From Octopus sinensis (lineage: Eukaryota): a stretch of 64,000 nt of DNA. The translations under genes were made by a program, and so were the position numbers. Shown in pieces: positions 9,025 to 50,099 of this stretch. Each line of letters opens with the position of its first letter. The first letter of the stretch is position 1. Where the stretch lies: contig NC_043000.1 in NCBI RefSeq assembly GCF_006345805.1, positions 85,374,001 to 85,438,000 on the forward strand. The letters are read 5' to 3'. The notes below the pieces were generated by a model. The model saw nothing but the letters and a program-made list of their open reading frames with translations. It searched no databases and was not told where the DNA came from.

Positions 9025-9798
9025 CACACCCGTGTATGTGTGTATGATCATTCCCTTTCAGACATAAGTCTCTGAAGGTTTCATCAGCATGGATTACAAT
9101 AAATACTTAAGTTGTATTATTTCTATTTGAAGTTTAGAAAATCTTTACAAGAAACTTTCTCTAGAGAAAAAAAAAAACTATTTGAAAGAAATAGTCTAAA
9201 ACCTCATCTCCAAATGAAATTATGCCAAATGCACCTTCATAAAATGCCTGAGGATGCCTCTAGCCTGTCAATGGAAAACAGTTCACCGACTAACACTAAA
9301 GTATAAACAAGATGTTAATTTCTTAGAAGAATATAAGGTAAGAAGAAATATAGATTTCTATTAAAAATTTGTCTACTAACAATATTTACATAAGTTTTAG
9401 AATGGGAGAAGGGAAGGATATTTGAAAGCAATAAAAAATAAACCCCAATAATTTGGCAAATGCGAAAATATTTTCATTGAGATTCATTTAGATTGTGAAC
9501 AACCGAAATTAAACTGTCTAAGATGTAGACAGGCTAGAATAGTGAAGTTTGAAAATTCCATGAGATTAAGATATCAACATATTGGTGAATTCTGCTAATG
9601 TGGTGTTTTCTTTTACAATATCAATGATGCTCTTTTTCAAACAAGAAGACCATCATGAAATATAGTCAACTTTAAAAATTCTTGACAGTTGAAAGAAGTC
9701 TTTTTTTTTCCTCTTGAAGAAGATTCTACAAAATCAGTAATTTTGATTGTTGGAATTAACTTTTGCAGGCTATTTCAGGTCTTTTTTTTTTTTTTTCT

Positions 9799-9838
<40 letters not shown>

Positions 9839-10488
9839 ACAGTGTTCAGGGAGTATTCTTTCGAATACTTTCGCAACAAACTTTATTTCTTCAATTCACT
9901 AAATGAAAAAATTGTTCATTAGGGATAAAATCTTAAATACAAATTTTGAAATTCGAAACATTTTCATTTCAAAATTGCTAATCAAAGTGTTATTTTGTGC
10001 ATAAAGTTTACTTTTTTAATTTTTTTTTGGCTTTAATAGTTCAAAAATTTTATTTTTTAAATTTTTTTTTGTTTCTTTTGTTTTCATAAAGAAAAATGTA
10101 ATAGTTGTTAACAAGCATACGAGATGATTTTTGTCTTTAGAAGGCACATGAAACCAAAAAGGCAGGTAAACATCAGCCATACCTTCACAGATACAATGGT
10201 AAACATTGGAAAGAGGCCAAATCTTAGAGTATTTCAAGAGTATGTATGTCTTATGTACTAGCTCAGATGCAGGGAAGAAATTGGATTAAAAACTATAGCT
10301 TTAAAAGAAAAAAAAAATGAAAACAGATTTAAGAGGAAGATAACAAAAAATGACAAAATTAAATAATGATATAAATTAAATGTCATAAAGTTATCTAAGT
10401 AAGGAGTTTAGAAACTGAATATAGAAAATGTACATAGCCTCCCTGCTGCTTCACTTAACTCCTATAGCTAATACAGAATAACTAAGAG

Positions 10489-12330
10489 CTAAATACCTTC
10501 ATGAAAGAATTGTGTTGCAAGAATATCCCCAGTGACAATTGTCTGGCACGATGCATCAATTTGCTTTGTACAGCAATTATTATTGTTACCATTAGTTTGT
10601 TCGTTGCTCAAGTCAACATCAGCACCGTATTTATCAGCAGATTGCCCATTTAACATATCTCCATTCTCAAGTATTGTATTGGTGTTGCTGCTCAGTCCAT
10701 TCATGAAAGGTTCTTTTTCACCATTATGGCATCTGGAATCACGAGGACTGTCGCCAAGAACAGACTGATTCATGTAATATCGTTCAGCTACCATAGAAGG
10801 ATTCTGTGCATCACCACCAGCCTCATCACTTAGATCAAGATCATCTATGTCTTTCATTCCTTCTAATTCCACAGATTTGAAGTTCCAAACTGGCACTACA
10901 CCGGCACCACTAGGCGCTGCATCAAAGAAAGCATACCTCAAACCTCCCACAGTGACTGGTGAATTGAGGATGTTGTTGTCGTTTAAGTCAGGAATTACTT
11001 TCTTCAGTTCATCGTCTATGTTGCCGAGAGGAGTGCCAGGATCTCTGGATCTTCCATCCAAAGGCAAATGGAGTCTTTCAGCAAGACGGTCAATCATATC
11101 CTCAATAGATTCATTTTCCTTCCATACTCGAGTGGCACGCCACCTAGCTCGACTGCCCTTTGGAGCTGGGATAGCATCAAAGCAAACAGTTTCACCAACA
11201 GACAAAAGTCTATTCAAATCATCTATATGGCGGCCAAAGATGCAACGGTCAATAAAAACATGTTCATGCCTTCCTAAATCAATGATACCCCAAAGTTTAG
11301 CAACATGATATATCTTCCCTTTTCTATTGGTAATCGTTGGTTTATTTGGACATGTTGGTTTACTGCCAGTGATTACAACATTTAATCGAGTATTTTTAAT
11401 CACTGACACCGTCTCATCTTCAGATATTGCAAAGATGTTTGAGTGCTGCCTCAAGAATTTTTCCAATTCAGTTTTACTCCATCCAATTGTATTCCTCAAA
11501 CTCTCTGGTGCTTGACTAAAATGGCCACTAAGACTGTTAAGCTTTATGTCACCTTTCTTCTCAATAATATTTTTCAGAAACATAACAGCTTTGTATTCAT
11601 TAGCAGTCATTGTCATAGGCCCAGACTTGGAACTCAATATGCCAGGTGACTTCAATGGCTTGGCATCCATTATATTTAAGCTGCGAGGTCTATTTTTTAA
11701 TTTAGGTGTCAATGGCATAGAAAGCATACCAGGGTCCCCTGCAAACTGTCTACCGTCATCATCAGTCTGGTCTGATTCTGACTTTAAGGGACTACAAGCC
11801 ATATTGTCCTTAAGACAAACAATATCCCCTTTCACTTCAAAAATTAAAGGATGTTTATGCAACCAGTCTTCAAATTCATTCTGTGGACCAACACACTCAC
11901 GGATTTCTGCAGAAGCCTGAGACAGATGACCAGCTAGACTTTTGGTAGCCATCCATTTTTCGCCCTTTTTAAGAAATTTGCTACGAAAATATTGAACGGC
12001 TTCTGTTTCAATGGATACTTCAGGAAGACTGAAACTTGAGGAAGATGATGCTGGACTACTATCACGAACATTGTTATTTACTGAACTACTCCAACAAGTA
12101 CCATCTGTTAAACACACAAGATTACCATTTACAGTGAAAAGAGAAGGATATTTAAGCAGGAATTTTTTTAACCCAGCCTCATTGCCACCTGCAGCATGCC
12201 GCATTTCAGATGTAAAATTTCGACTGCCAAAGCGACCAGCCAACTGGCTAATACTGAGTGGTGAAGGGCTGTGGTTCATCAACACCTCAAGGAAATATAA
12301 CATAGCTTTGTGACCTGGATCCTCCGCCAT
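10489..12330 (-). CDS. Egalitarian/LIN-66-like RNA-binding protein, 613 aa, single coding exon: 3 winged-helix (Egl-type LOTUS-like) repeats + cold-shock/OB-like domain + low-complexity tail
   Basis: Uninterrupted ORF, ATG in AAATAATGG context, TAG stop. Three internal repeats (aa ~5-74, ~107-174, ~243-311) share a YF/FL...SL.GH/RF.....R...G......FL..HP..F.V....V pattern like the N-terminal repeats of Drosophila Egl as I recall them. aa ~335-405 (KGKIYHVAKLWGIIDLGRHEHVFID...VGETVCFDA...WRATRVW) has a cold-shock-like beta pattern. No exonuclease domain. Confidence 0.9.
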   Translation of the reverse strand: MAEDPGHKAMLYFLEVLMNHSPSPLSISQLAGRFGSRNFTSEMRHAAGGNEAGLKKFLLKYPSLFTVNGNLVCLTDGTCWSSSVNNNVRDSSPASSSSSFSLPEVSIETEAVQYFRSKFLKKGEKWMATKSLAGHLSQASAEIRECVGPQNEFEDWLHKHPLIFEVKGDIVCLKDNMACSPLKSESDQTDDDGRQFAGDPGMLSMPLTPKLKNRPRSLNIMDAKPLKSPGILSSKSGPMTMTANEYKAVMFLKNIIEKKGDIKLNSLSGHFSQAPESLRNTIGWSKTELEKFLRQHSNIFAISEDETVSVIKNTRLNVVITGSKPTCPNKPTITNRKGKIYHVAKLWGIIDLGRHEHVFIDRCIFGRHIDDLNRLLSVGETVCFDAIPAPKGSRARWRATRVWKENESIEDMIDRLAERLHLPLDGRSRDPGTPLGNIDDELKKVIPDLNDNNILNSPVTVGGLRYAFFDAAPSGAGVVPVWNFKSVELEGMKDIDDLDLSDEAGGDAQNPSMVAERYYMNQSVLGDSPRDSRCHNGEKEPFMNGLSSNTNTILENGDMLNGQSADKYGADVDLSNEQTNGNNNNCCTKQIDASCQTIVTGDILATQFFHEGI

Positions 12331-12410
12331 TATTTTAGGTTGGTAAGAGCCAAATGAGGAATCAAGATAAGTGTCTTGAAAAGAATCCCTAAAAATAGAA
12401 AAATAAAATT
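12331..12410 (-). other. 3' splice acceptor and 58-nt 5'UTR part of the coding exon
   Basis: Minus strand reads TTTTATTTTTCTATTTTTAG|GGATTC; AG is at 12390-12389 and the exon starts at 12388, so an upstream non-coding exon is implied. Confidence 0.7.
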
Positions 12411-35220: not shown

Positions 35221-38061
35221 TCATCATCATCATCATCATCATTTAGCGTCCGTTTTCCATGCTAGCATGGGTTGGACGGTTCAGCTGGGGTCTGTGAAGC
35301 CGGAAGGCTTCATCAGGCCCAGTCAGATCTGGCAGTGTTTCTACAGCTGGATGCCCTTCCTAACGCCAACCACTCCATGAGTGTAGTGGGTGCTTTTTAC
35401 GTGCCACCCACACAGGTGCCAGACAGAGCTGGCAAACGGCCACGAGCGGATGGTGATTTTACGTGCCACCGGCACGGGGGCCAGGCGAGGCTGGCAACGG
35501 ACACGAACGGATGGTGCTTTTATGTGCCACCGGCACAGGGGCCAGGCGAGGCTGGCAATGGACACGAACGGATGGTGCTTTTTACGTGCCACCGGCATGA
35601 GGCCAGTCGGGGTGGCGCTGGCAGCGGTCACAAACGGATGGTTCTCTTACGTGCCACCGGCACTGGTAACTCAGCTGCAATTTCTATTGATCGATTTCGA
35701 TTCTGATCCTCACTTGCCTCAACAGGTCTTCACAAGTAGAGTTTTGTGTCCCAAGAAGGGAAGGTATGCATACGTAGGCTGGCTCCATACCATGTAGAAG
35801 GCCACGGGTTATGGTCTCACTTGTCCTGCCGGGTCTTCTTGCGCACAGCATACTTCCAGAGGTCTCGGTCTCTAGTCATTTCCTCAGTGAGACCTAAAGT
35901 TTGAAGGTCGTGCTTCACCACCTCGTCCCAGGTTTTCCTGGGTCTGCCTCTTCCACAGGTTCCCTCAACTGCTAGGGTGTGGCACTTTTTCACACAACTA
36001 TCTTCATCCATTCTCGCTACATGCCCATACCAGCGCAAACATCTTTCTTGCACACCACAACTGATGCTTCTTAGGTCCAGCTTTTCTCTCAAGGTACTTA
36101 CACTCTGTCAAGTATGAGTACTGACATTACATATCCATCGGAGCATACTGGCTTCATTTCTTGCGAGCTTACACATATCCTCAGCAGTCACGGCCCATGT
36201 TTCACTGCCATGTAGCATGGCTGTTCATACACACGCATCATACAGTCTGCCTTTTACTCTGTGCAAGAGGCCTTTTGTCACCAGTAGAGGTAAGAGCTCT
36301 CTGAACTTTGCCCAAGCTATTCTTACTCTAGCAGTTACACTTTCAGCACACCCGCCACCGCTGCTGACTTGGTCACCTAGGTAACGGAAGCTATCAACTA
36401 TTTCTAGTTTTCCTCCCTGGAAAGTGACGGAAGTTGGTCTCAAAGCATTTTCAGTGTTTATTGTTCCTGAGCATCTGCCACATACAAAAACTATCTTCCT
36501 AGTTAGCCTTCCTTTGACATTGCTGCACCTCTTACGTGTCCATAGCTTACACTTGGTGCATCTTATAGAGTTTCTACCTACACCTTTTCTACAGATCGAG
36601 CAGGGCCATCTACCTGAAGGCGTTTGTGATTTGTCTACCTTCCTACTGATTACAACTTTGGTTTTAGCTAGATTGACTCTAAGGCCCTTCGATTCTAATC
36701 CTTGTTTCCACACCTGAAACTTCTCCCCCAGTTCTGATAGTGACTCAGCAATTAGAGCAAGGTCATCAGCAAAGAGGAGCTCCCAGGGGCATCCTGTCTT
36801 GAATTCCTCCGTTATTGCCTGGAGGACTATGATAAATAGGAGGGGGCTGAGGACTGAGCCTTGGTGGACCCCTACCTCTACCCGGAATTCTTCACTGTAC
36901 TCGTTGCCAACCCTCACCTTACTAGCAGCGTCCCTGTACATGGCTCGCACAGCTCTCACTAACCATTCATCTATCCCTAGTTTCCACATTGACCACCAGA
37001 TAAGGGATCGGGGGACCCTGTCGAAGGCTTTCTCCATGTCAACAAAAGCCAGGTACAGGGGCTTATCTTTGGCTAGGTATTTCTCCTGCAGCTGCCTTAC
37101 CAGGAATATAGCATCAGTGGTACTTTTCCCTGGCACGAACCCAAACTGCATCTCATCTAAACTAACTCTCTCTCTAATTAGTTGGGCTATGACCCTCTCC
37201 GTAACCTTCATCACCTGATCCAACAGCTTGATACCTCTGTAATTATTTGTATCTCGGGCGTCACCTTTACCTTTGTAGCAGTTGACTATTATGCTGCTAC
37301 ACCAGTCATTGGGTATGACTCCTTTGTGTATCACCTGATTAACTATACGGGTGACTAGGCTATAGCCAACACTACCAGACATTTTGAGCATCTCTGCAGT
37401 GATTCCTGATGGGCCTGGGGCTTTCCCTGTCTTCATGCTTCTAATTGCCTTAACTACCAAGGAACTATCAACTCGGATAGCTGGTCCCTCTGTTGGGTCA
37501 ACATTCGGCAGACTCTCTTTATCCCATTCATTTTCTTTATTCAGCAACCTTTCATAGTGGCGTCTCCAAACCTCTCTCTTTGCATCCTCATTTAGCACAA
37601 GTGAACCATCTTCCATGCGAACACACTTCTCTCCTACCATATCACGATTCTCTCTCACACACTGTCTTGCAACGCAAAACACCTCCAGTCTTTGGTCCTC
37701 ACGGCGCAGAACATTGGCAAATTTTTTCTTATCTGCTTCCCCTCTGGCTAAATAAACCTGTCTCCTAGCTTCTCTTTTGGCAGTCTGATACAATTCCCTG
37801 CTACCCCCATTTTTCCAGTCCTTCCAAGCCTGTCTCTTTTCTCTAATAGCCCTGTCTACAACATTGTTCCACCACCACGTTATTCTAGGTCGAGAGGGGA
37901 CTTTGCACCAGCCACAGATCTGGTCAGTGGATCTCAGCAGGTTGTCCCTTAGAAACGTCCAGTTGTCTTCTACCCCCTGTGATGCTCTATCCCCTTCTAC
38001 TTCGTCAAAGGCTTCAAGTAATATGTCCCTAAATCTCTGTTCAATTGCAGGATCTTTGGAC
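35221..38061 (-). mobile_element. RTE-clade LINE, 5'-truncated (~2.8 kb), RT nearly intact
   Basis: ORF 36225-38063 with RT motifs YRGIKLL, QFGF.PG.STTDAIF, FVDMEKAFDRV, GVHQGSVLSPLLF, LLFADDL, FRYLG. Continuation to QDK* at 35817 is broken by two TGA stops. 3'UTR tandem repeats and an (ATG)n tail follow. Confidence 0.95.
35401..35665 (-). repeat. 61-65-bp GC-rich tandem repeat in the RTE 3'UTR (5 GTGCC-NNN-GGCAC-type motifs)
   Basis: Motif starts at 35401, 35463, 35524, 35586 and 35651. Confidence 0.9.
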
Positions 38062-38136
38062 ATATATATATATATGTATGTATGTATTATATCTATCTAT
38101 ATATATATATATATATATGTATTATATATATTTATA

Positions 38137-38704
38137 AGGACAAGTGAGGCCATAACCCGTGGGCCCTACCTGGGACGTAGTCAGTCCACCTGTGCATACC
38201 TTCCTTCTTGGGACACATAACTCTACTTGTGAAGACCTGTTGAGGCAAGTGAAAATCAAAATCAAAATCAAAGTATCAAATCGAAATCGATCCACATCAT
38301 TGGAATTTGTAGTTTGTGGTACCAGTGCCAGTGGCACATAAGAGAACCATCCGAACGTAGCCATAGCCAGCACTGCATCGATTGGGCCCCGTGCTGGTGG
38401 CACGTAACAAACACCATCCGATCGTGGCCGTGCCAGCCCTGCCTGGCCTCCGTGCCGGTGGCACGTAAAAAACACCATCCGAGTGTGGCCATTCGCCAGC
38501 CTCATCTGGCACCTGTGTCGGTGGCACATAAAAAGCACCCACTACACTCACGGAGTGGTTGGCGTTAGGAAGGGCATCCAGCTGTAGAAACACCGCCAGA
38601 TATGACTGGCCTGGTACAGCCTTCGGGCTTCCCAGACCCCAGTTAAACCATCCAACCCATGCTAGCATGGAAAGCGGATGTTAAACGATGATGATGATGA
38701 TGAT
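38137..38704 (+). mobile_element. RTE LINE 3' fragment (3'UTR only), inverted relative to 35221-38061
   Basis: Begins at GGACAAGTGAG (ORF stop), carries the ~62-bp repeats and ends GCATGGAAAGCGGATGTTAAAC(GAT)n. Confidence 0.92.
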
Positions 38705-48650: not shown

Positions 48651-48806
48651 ATATTATTATTCACAACAAGTATTAAGTATTAAACCAGTAATTCATTGTA
48701 TGATACCACACCTTAATGAGGCTAATTTAACCTTTAATTGAATGTATGTGTGTATATATATATATATTGTTATATGTAACAATAATTGTTATATATATGT
48801 ATATAT

Positions 48807-50099
48807 AACTCTATAAGATGCACCAAGTGTAAGCTATGGACACATAAGAGGTGCAGCAATGTCAAAGGAAGGCTAACAAGGAAAATAGTTTTTGTATGTG
48901 GCAGATGCTCAGAAGCAATAAACACTGAAAATGTGCAGAGACCAACTTCCACCACATTCCAGGGAGAAAAACTAGAAATAGTTGATAGCTTCCGTTACCT
49001 AGGTGACCAAGTCAGTAGCGGGGGTGAGTGTGCTGAAAGTGTAACTGCTAGAGTAAGAATAGCCCGGGCAAAGTTCAGAGAGCTCTTACCCCTGCTGGTG
49101 ACAAAAGGCCTCTCGCTCAGAGTAAAAGGCAGACTGTATGATGCATGTGTACGAACAGCCATGCTACATGGCAGTGAAACATGGGCCGTGACTGCTGAGG
49201 ATATGTGTAAGCTCGCAAGAAATGAAGCCAGTATGCTCCGATGGATGTGTAATGTCAGTGTTCATACTCGACAGAGTGTAAGTACCTTGAGAGAAAAGCT
49301 GGACCTAAGAAGCATCAGTTGTGGTGTGCAAGAAAGATGTTTGCACTGGTATGGTCATGTGACGAGAATGGCTGAAGATAGTTGTGTGAAAAAGTGCCAC
49401 ACCCTAGCAGTTGAGGGAACCTGTGGAAGAGGTAGACCCAGGAAAACTTGGGATGAGGTGGTGAAGCACGACCTCCGAACTTTAGGTCTCACCGAGGAAA
49501 TGACTAGAGACCGAGACCTATGGAAGTATGCTGTGCGTGAGAAGACCCAGCAGGACAAGTGAGACCATAACCCATGGCCTCTACCTGGGATGTAGCCAGT
49601 CCACTTATGCATACCTTTCCTTCTTGGGACACAAAACTCTACTTGTGAAGACCTGTTGAGGCAAGTGGAAATCAAAATCGAAATCGATCAACATCAATGG
49701 AAATTGTAGCTGTGATACCAGTGCCGGTGGCACGTAAGCAAACCATCCGAACTTGGCCGTTGCTAGCGCCGCCCCAATGGGCTTCCGTGCCGGTGGTACG
49801 TAAAAAGCACCATCCGATCGTGGCCATTGCCAGCCTCGCCTGGTCCCCGTGTCCATGGGATGTAAAAAGCACCATCCGATCGTGGCCGTTGCCAGCCTCG
49901 CCTGGCCCCCGTGCTGGTGGCACGTAAAAAGCACCCACTACACTCATGGAGTGGTTGGCGTTAGGAAGGGCATCCAGCCGTAGAAACATTACCAGATCAG
50001 ACTGGGCCTGGTGCAGCCTTCTGGCTTCCCAGACCCCAGTTGAACCGTCCAACCCATGCTAGCATGGAAAGCAGACGCTAAATGATGATGATGATGATG
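48807..50099 (+). mobile_element. RTE LINE 3' fragment (~1.3 kb) with open C-terminal ORF
   Basis: ORF NSIRCTKCKLWTHKRC...FRYLG...RGRPRKTW...QQDK* matches the 35-38 kb copy; 3'UTR repeats and (ATG)n tail. Confidence 0.95.

Follow-up and report, generated by a model that had tools for sequence, protein, structure and literature searches.

An Egalitarian-like triple winged-helix protein of Octopus sinensis with a predicted cold-shock-type barrel and a candidate LC8 site

A stretch of 64,000 nucleotides from Octopus sinensis (contig NC_043000.1, positions 85,374,001 to 85,438,000; referred to as the window) encodes on its reverse strand a protein of 613 amino acids (aa), which combines three N-terminal winged-helix domains of the kind found in Egalitarian (Egl) with a small beta-barrel and a long disordered tail that ends in a motif aligning with the LC8 (dynein light chain) site of Egl. 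With moderate confidence the gene is proposed to encode an LC8-dimerised RNA adaptor of the Egl superfamily, in which the ExoHD-XAD part of Egl is replaced by a single divergent cold-shock-type barrel. Among the adaptors that connect particular mRNAs with a motor Egl is understood best, and it is usually seen as a protein of insects and nematodes with an exonuclease-like fold. The mechanistically most informative features of the Octopus protein are the RNA-reading residues of its second winged helix and the LC8-site motif, neither of which was mentioned in an earlier reading of this gene made from the DNA letters (the original prediction). The features of the gene and of the encoded protein are collected in Table 1.

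The Egalitarian-Type Winged-Helix Domains

Pfam WH_Egal (PF23713) matches the protein in three significant stretches (E=2e-68), and AlphaFold2 (AF2) supplied with 56 homologues models three winged helix-turn-helix (wHTH) domains at aa 5-74, 107-173 and 239-310, as well as an extra conserved strand at aa 318-321, all with a predicted local distance difference test score (pLDDT) >90. The three repeated helical domains of the original prediction are thereby recovered by two methods. Their likeness to Egl, which had been proposed as well, is seen in sequence and in fold: a phmmer search against the PDB sequences matched Drosophila Egl over aa 8-181 (E=6e-21) and in Foldseek the N-terminus matched the 2026 Egl-BicD-RNA cryo-EM structures at ~1e-10. 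Following the naming of the Egl domains, the three winged helices are termed ED1, ED2 and ED3. ED1 is the best-conserved domain with a mean identity of 78% among 55 spiralian homologues; its helix 1 is KAMLYFLEVLMN, in which MLYFLEVLM resembles LLFFLERLL of Egl, its helix 2 is ISQLAGRFG, and it also reaches Pfam wHTH_TTC3 (E=1.6e-6).

According to the structural report on Egl, ED1 is the BicD-binding domain and the bases are read in the minor groove by His31 and Cys35 in ED1 and by Gly124 (through its backbone), Ser127 and Gln128 in ED2 (PMC13186709). Egl Gly124, His125, Ser127 and Gln128 map to G134, H135, S137 and Q138 of the Octopus protein, which are invariant in 56/56 sequences. A Ser-Gln pair is found at the equivalent position of helix 2 in ED1 (ISQLAG) and in ED3, where helix 2 carries the related motif GHFSQAP and is accompanied by the conserved strand LNVVITGSKP.

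In the same report the Egl domains are described as structurally close to LOTUS domains (PMC13186709), and one flatworm member of the family is labelled 'HTH OST-type domain-containing protein' by UniProt. The protein could on this basis be taken for a LOTUS-like germ-granule scaffold, in which the winged helices would recruit Vasa or bind G-rich RNA and a cold-shock domain (CSD) would add RNA binding in nuage or germ plasm. This is considered very unlikely: no Pfam OST-HTH/LOTUS match was obtained up to E=10, in helix 2 the conserved residues are the ones that Egl uses for the minor groove of double-stranded RNA, the top fold matches are Egl and not LOTUS proteins, and the LC8 motif is a feature of Egl.

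The Barrel in Place of ExoHD-XAD

The original prediction that the exonuclease domain is missing agrees with all searches made: the protein has no Pfam match to one even at E up to 10, the AF2 model, which contains only ~90 folded residues between ED3 and the tail, shows no such fold, and an exonuclease domain was found in none of the scanned family members. As to an XAD, the model has a single helix at aa 409-419 after the barrel and the remainder is at pLDDT <50. An exonuclease-bearing Egl was also sought in spiralians by a length-restricted search (~690-2200 aa, with ED1-ED2 scored), which returned family members only; the search missed Drosophila Egl itself, the word index being too insensitive, and this negative therefore carries no weight.

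The barrel is built from the strands b1 (aa 333-343), b2 (aa 347-353, LWGIIDL), b3 (aa 356-361, HVFID), b4 (aa 381-388) and b5 (aa 397-404) with pLDDT values of 84-93, and a model of the domain alone gives the same five-stranded barrel. In 56 aligned spiralian sequences 30 columns within aa 338-403 are invariant. Its assignment is less direct. The best fold matches in the PDB are S1 domains (bS1 with E=7e-4, the S1-like domain of DBC1 with a TM score of 0.69, NusA and PNPase), and cold-shock folds follow close behind (YBX1 CSD, Unr CSDs and CspB with TMt 0.73 and a root-mean-square deviation of 2.8; Foldseek). At the sequence level aa 306-500 have no Pfam CSD match even at E up to 10, the best Pfam hit being DUF7930 (E=0.24), and gave chance-level matches only against the PDB sequences. 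Profile comparison by hhalign, for which the CSD and S1 reference alignments were validated against the PDB, yielded weak and about equal results (CSD: E=0.003, probability 10%; S1: E=0.006, probability 6%), with beta1-beta4 in the correct register for both. This register agrees with the original placement of the LWGIIDL and HVFID strands like the RNP1/RNP2 strands of CSDs.

The relatives of the barrel were more informative. With the module as profile, an exhaustive search yielded 160 proteins, and among 46 divergent relatives WH_Egal was matched in 35, Pfam CSD in 16 (best 3e-10), DUF7930 in 12 and an S1-like domain in one. With local hidden Markov models (HMMs), 18 of 24 domain matches to the canonical CSD coincided with segments matched by the HMM of the Octopus module, and an S1 reference HMM had zero matches to family members (24 for the CSD HMM). 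Because intermediate sequences reach CSD and not S1, the barrel, whose own profile cannot decide between the two, is putatively assigned to the divergent cold-shock-type OB domains. What had been predicted as a cold-shock/OB domain thus stands as a modelled five-stranded OB barrel with a link to CSDs through intermediates, but the Octopus copy itself misses Pfam CSD and keeps roughly half of the stacking residues. In the CSD register the kept ones are CspA F12, F18 and F31, which correspond to Y/F341, W347 and F359.

Among the invariant residues of the barrel H342, K345, D351, H355, E356, H357, R394, W397 and W403 are distinctive, and this rigid conservation suggests a specific ligand.

As a separate observation, the invariant residues His342, His355, His357, Asp351, Glu356 and Asp361 together with Trp347, Trp397 and Trp403 (positions 11248-11319 and 11116-11154, reverse strand) form a His/Asp/Glu/Trp cluster in aa 338-361 and 393-405 that is atypical for CSDs and may bind a metal or serve a specific partner.

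The C-Terminal LC8-Site Motif

The last 25 residues of the protein align with Egl 957-981, with C595-Q-T-I-V599-T-G-D facing S965-Q-T-L-S969-T-G-D, and AF2 models a beta-hairpin at aa 594-609 after the long disordered tail. In Egl, LC8 no longer binds at 'a consensus LC8-binding site' after the double substitution S965K+S969R (PMC6056234). The family consensus is CQTxxTG[DE], with Q596, T597, T600, A605 and T606 invariant. The HMM of the family C-terminus gave the Egl peptide 16.5 bits, the best of 2000 shuffles reaching 12.7, and all of its matches in relatives (62/62) lie at most 25 aa from the C-terminus. At the level of sequence, CQTIVTGDILATQFF is therefore a candidate LC8 site.

Gene, Transcript and Selection

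The 613-aa frame is intact, lies exactly at the coordinates given in the original prediction and is one of two open reading frames (ORFs) >600 aa in the whole window, which has a GC content of ~33%. The protein is 100% identical to the database model P0001 (633 aa), save for 20 extra N-terminal residues of P0001, which uses a splice acceptor at 12390/12389 and splits the start codon. Every orthologue begins with MA[ED]DPGHK; translation therefore probably starts with the ATG of 12330, which places the entire coding sequence (CDS) in one exon, the N-terminus of P0001 being probably a mis-annotated 5' untranslated region (5'UTR). On the 5' side, similarity to the transcript of a relative stops at 12350.

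This relative is 94% identical in protein and 83% in nucleotides; its transcript-sized assemblies align along the entire CDS and its gene was found on 125 of them, by which transcription is seen in the relative. The comparison with its transcript gives a ratio of nonsynonymous to synonymous substitution rates (dN/dS) of 0.024 at dS ~1.5, i.e., strong purifying selection, with dN values of 0.006-0.014 within the folded domains. Such a protein identity at saturated dS would fit two lineages that separated early among cephalopods. In the databases 214 homologues were found, reaching E=0; together with the invariant columns of the barrel and the dN/dS value they place the protein far beyond chance. 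Two islands of the 3'UTR are 73-79% identical to the relative's transcript, though the synonymous sites of the CDS are saturated, which suggests that they are conserved regulatory elements in the gene's own mRNA. A (TG)n-type microsatellite at ~9689-9922 (forward strand) lies in the probable 3'UTR or downstream of it and creates a spurious ORF reading VCVCVCVCV.

A single-exon CDS in an AT-rich, repeat-rich region that holds a reverse-transcriptase element could also represent a retrocopy, a decaying pseudogene that is open by chance, or an annotation artefact. This reading is scarcely credible and was dropped, as it is effectively refuted by the selection and conservation data: dN/dS and the intact 613 codons speak against it, as do orthologues in several phyla with 40-63% identity over the full length, the acceptor site, which implies an intron-bearing 5'UTR, the conserved 3'UTR islands and the transcript-sized assemblies of the relative. 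Taken together, the dN/dS value and the conservation show that the gene functions under constraint and is no decaying retrocopy.

Distribution of the Family

The full-length orthologues are found in gastropods, bivalves, a chiton, annelids, nemerteans and a brachiopod, the closest named relatives being those of gastropods and bivalves (~62% identity). The databases name them at most 'Egal-1 winged helix domain-containing protein' or 'egalitarian protein homolog'. The domain order in more distant relatives was derived from local HMM mapping and name look-ups. Flatworms and Seison, a rotifer relative, have the order ED1-ED2-ED3-barrel-C-terminal motif with long insertions, and the barrel is also present in the orthonectid Intoshia. 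Priapulus has three EDs and 3-4 barrels, and a second architecture with one ED and 2-4 barrels, often with the C-terminal motif, occurs in ticks, spiders, a scorpion and the centipede Strigamia. The family is therefore not specific to lophotrochozoans, as the original prediction had supposed: proteins with ED, CSD-like module and C-terminal motif are found also in flatworms, Seison, Intoshia, Priapulus, chelicerates and a myriapod, and the ED is joined to CSD-like modules even in a tunicate. Overall, the family that combines EDs and CSD-like modules is spread widely over the protostomes; databases list it, but it is unstudied.

The tunicate protein, Clavelina lepadiformis P0195 (XP_076823928), contains an ED, a ZNF598-type RING and three CSD-like modules, and a C-terminal motif was not detected in it. 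Judged from its sequence, it would place the pairing of ED and CSD also in a deuterostome, in the context of an E3 ligase.

Proposed Mechanism and Its Main Alternative

For an Egl-type adaptor the following mechanism is proposed. LC8 would bind the C-terminal CQTxxTG[DE] strand and dimerise the protein as in Egl. ED2, and probably also ED1 and ED3, which share the Ser-Gln motif in helix 2, would insert into the minor groove of structured RNA (stem-loops). The CSD-like barrel would add a further contact, either to single-stranded RNA of a loop or bulge or to a conserved partner, and would thereby take the role that ExoHD-XAD has in Egl. Finally, and as the most tentative step, ED1 might dock on the C-terminal coiled coil of BicD and so link the RNA to dynein, which would carry it toward the minus ends of microtubules; by analogy with Egl, such a coupling to BicD/dynein through ED1 is possible.

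Several observations weigh against this mechanism. CspA W11, F20 and H33 correspond to I340, I349 and D361, so that about 3/6 stacking positions are kept, and the barrel may therefore bind a protein instead of RNA. The base contacts of Egl ED1, His31 and Cys35, are Ser28 (invariant) and Gly32 (55/56) here; RNA reading by ED1, if there is any, therefore differs from that of Egl. The linker between ED1 and ED2 has ~28 aa in the Octopus protein and >300 aa in flatworms, and since the domain-swapped dimer of Egl is attributed to a short linker, such a geometry need not hold in this family. ExoHD-XAD, which is required for high-affinity binding in Egl, is absent, and the match of the C-terminus to Egl is not significant in the statistics of HMMER (independent E-value, i-E, of 450).

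The main alternative is a cytoplasmic regulator like LIN-66 or Unr (CSDE1) that acts post-transcriptionally or on translation. Its CSD-like barrel and its winged helices would bind mRNAs and thereby set their translation or stability, and LC8 would serve as a dimerisation clamp only, with no link to BicD and dynein transport. The connection of the barrel to CSDs fits this alternative, with Unr and YBX1 CSDs among the Foldseek matches, and so do the tandem arrays of 2-4 modules in relatives, which are like those of Unr. LIN-66 acts via its CSD in translation and developmental timing, and faint Pfam WHD_lin-66 matches exist. In vitro, transport driven by Egl needs no LC8 binding and LC8 may be a chaperone or dimeriser (PMC6056234), and the ZNF598-type RING fused to the modules in the tunicate relative is a domain of the ribosome-quality-control type. 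However, ED1, the BicD-binding domain in Egl, is the most conserved part of the protein, and the array of ED1-ED2-ED3, accessory module and C-terminal LC8 site follows the linear order of Egl; that of LIN-66 differs, its published CSD being N-terminal to the rest of the fold. A regulator of this type is considered somewhat unlikely, and an LC8-dimerised adaptor of the Egl superfamily is preferred.

The relation to LIN-66 was considered separately, as the protein had originally been proposed to link the Egl and LIN-66 families. The papers on LIN-66 describe it as nematode-specific, with no BLAST homologues outside nematodes, and place a canonical-looking CSD (KWF-type beta-1, RNP1/RNP2) at aa 101-171 inside a structured region of aa 101-370 with flanking disorder; a winged helix is not mentioned. 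The original statement that both a winged helix and a CSD are present in LIN-66 agrees with the Pfam label of PF26288, 'WHD_lin-66', the papers mentioning the CSD only. Faint precomputed matches to PF26288 were found on the Octopus protein, on its 94%-identical relative and, among the matches listed, on 10/120 homologues. No nematode protein was present among the 30 representative matches that could be named. The proposed link between the two families goes further than the shared domain types and these faint matches on which it is based: what the sequences suggest is a shared domain vocabulary and not a demonstrated homology.

Two relatives with the order CSD-then-ED (P0220 and P0258) were looked at as LIN-66-type candidates and rejected; in precomputed Pfam, WHD_lin-66 is absent from both and weak WH_Egal matches are the only ones.

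Further Features of the Tail and the Window

Two more motifs are conserved in the disordered tail. In FDAAPSGAGVVPVWNF, D470 and S474 are invariant and A471, G477, W482 and N483 are conserved to at least 90%, and its HMM found it in group-A (spiralian) members only. In MVAERYYMNQSVLGD, E516 is conserved to at least 90%, and its HMM matches lie in group-A (spiralian) members. No known counterpart could be identified for FDAAPSGAGVVPVWNF or MVPExYxM; eIF4E binding (YxxxxL-phi) or a similar reading of the tail motifs was considered and does not fit on inspection.

Table 1. Features of the Egl-like gene, its transcript and its protein (positions within the window)
Feature	Position	Strand	Basis
Complete CDS, 613 aa + stop, single exon	10489..12330	(-)	ORF list; ATG start
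Probable 5'UTR: exon start upstream of ATG	12331..12390	(-)	polypyrimidine tract, AG acceptor at 12390/12389
ED1, aa 4-77, wHTH	12100..12321	(-)	WH_Egal best stretch 7-76; aligns with Egl 12-79; pLDDT 87-96
ED2, aa 105-176, with invariant AGHLSQAS	11803..12018	(-)	aligns with Egl 99-174
ED3, aa 238-322	11365..11619	(-)	third WH_Egal stretch; model elements 239-321, pLDDT >90
Putative divergent cold-shock-type OB barrel, aa 333-404, and helix 409-419	11074..11334	(-)	two independent AF2 runs
Conserved motif FDAAPSGAGVVPVWNF, aa 469-484	10879..10926	(-)	predicted-disordered region, pLDDT <50
Conserved motif MVAERYYMNQSVLGD, aa 513-527, consensus MVPExYxM	10750..10794	(-)	short helix modelled at 517-525
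C-terminal motif CQTIVTGDILATQFF, aa 595-609, candidate LC8 site	10504..10548	(-)	aligns with LC8 site of Egl (965-SQTLSTGD-972)
3'UTR conserved islands, contiguous with the coding exon	10062-10186 and 9874-10029	(-)	blastn match of the window to transcript L001 of the relative

Elsewhere in the window, a reverse-transcriptase (RT) ORF of 612 aa is located at 36228-38063 on the reverse strand (Pfam RVT_1, E=4e-31). It is flanked by inverted-repeat arms of ~500 bp (35223-35759 and 38203-38704; 88-93% complementary), the left of which holds 61-nt tandem repeats at 35435-35683. This setting is unusual for an RT of the non-LTR (long terminal repeat) type and could be the result of an insertion into a foldback or palindromic repeat. 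Another ORF, of 258 aa, lies at 48786-49562 on the forward strand; it contains a stretch (CTKCKLWT.KRCSNVKGRLTRKIVFVCGRCS...) that is nearly the same in the C-terminal region of the RT ORF, and then extends beyond it. This ORF has no Pfam match and, as judged from the stretch in common, represents the retroelement family of the RT ORF in a second copy that is truncated.

Significance

No functional study of the protein was found in the literature, as the original prediction had anticipated, and no paper was found on an Egl-family protein with a cold-shock-type domain or on one that ties such a protein to mRNA localisation in spiralians. The protein is catalogued in databases yet uncharacterised, and it is of interest to specialists in mRNA transport without being categorically new. 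The family represents a deeply conserved sister architecture of Egl, in which the RNA-reading residues of ED2 and the LC8-site motif are kept and a cold-shock-type barrel would stand for ExoHD-XAD. This would imply that the winged-helix pair and the dimerisation by LC8 are the conserved core and that the third RNA module is interchangeable. It also provides a concrete candidate for dynein-dependent mRNA localisation in spiralians. In Ilyanassa and Spisula mRNAs localise to centrosomes, and we know of no trans-acting factor for this localisation. Furthermore, the family offers an evolutionary context for LIN-66, which is currently held to be nematode-specific, and it suggests what Pfam DUF7930 probably does; this entry is matched by 12 of the 46 divergent relatives and reached by the Octopus module itself with E=0.24 only.

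A more far-reaching proposal, which we regard as rather improbable, is that the Egl scaffold of ED1-3 and C-terminal LC8 site is ancestral to protostomes and that its accessory module was exchanged in evolution: insects and nematodes would have ExoHD-XAD in this place, and Spiralia, priapulids, chelicerates and myriapods one or more CSD-type barrels. If this were true, the Octopus protein would be the functional counterpart of Egl in spiralians and would supply the trans-acting factor that is missing between localisation elements and BicD-dynein. It would thereby become a candidate for two processes, the segregation of centrosomal mRNAs in embryos of molluscs and the transport of mRNAs in neurons of cephalopods. 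LIN-66, for its part, would have branched off in nematodes from the lineage with ED and CSD and been rearranged, and would not be an invention of nematodes.

Comparison With Known Systems

LOTUS/OST-HTH proteins (Oskar, TDRD5/7, MARF1) and the wHTH proteins TTC3/DZIP3 share with the Octopus protein a winged helix-turn-helix with an extra helix. They differ in their partner domains (Tudor, NYN, RING/TPR), and none of them has the arrangement of ED, CSD and LC8 site. S1 domains, as in bS1, PNPase, NusA and DBC1, are the top structural matches of the barrel, and its pattern G.I..V...G.I.LG looks S1-like; in contrast, the S1 HMM matches no family member and the hhalign result for S1 is no better than for CSD. 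With Unr/CSDE1, YBX1, LIN28 and the bacterial Csp proteins the barrel has the five strands of the OB fold in common, with beta1-beta4 in register, and the relatives with tandem arrays, some copies of which reach Pfam CSD (best E=3e-10), resemble Unr/CSDE1 in particular. The Octopus copy differs from these CSD proteins in missing Pfam CSD and in having an invariant set of His, Asp, Trp and Arg residues of its own. LIN-66 has, according to the literature and Pfam, a CSD, a winged helix (PF26288), to which the Octopus protein gives a faint match, and long disordered regions. Its CSD is N-terminal to the rest of its fold, and the reports on it describe no LC8 motif and no set of three EDs.

The closest known system is that of Drosophila Egl and C. 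elegans EGAL-1, whose architecture is taken here from the structural report (PMC13186709). They have the same three N-terminal winged helices in the same order, with ED1-ED2 being ~33% identical, and in Egl the minor-groove residues GH.SQ of ED2 are identical, the LC8-site motif is likewise placed at the extreme C-terminus and the folded domains are likewise separated by disordered linkers. The differences lie in the accessory module, which is ExoHD and the tetrahelical XAD in Egl and a ~72-aa CSD-like barrel with one helix in the Octopus protein, in ED3, which is divergent in Egl and well conserved here, in the linker between ED1 and ED2, which is longer than that of Egl, and in the total length of 613 aa compared to 1004 aa in Egl.

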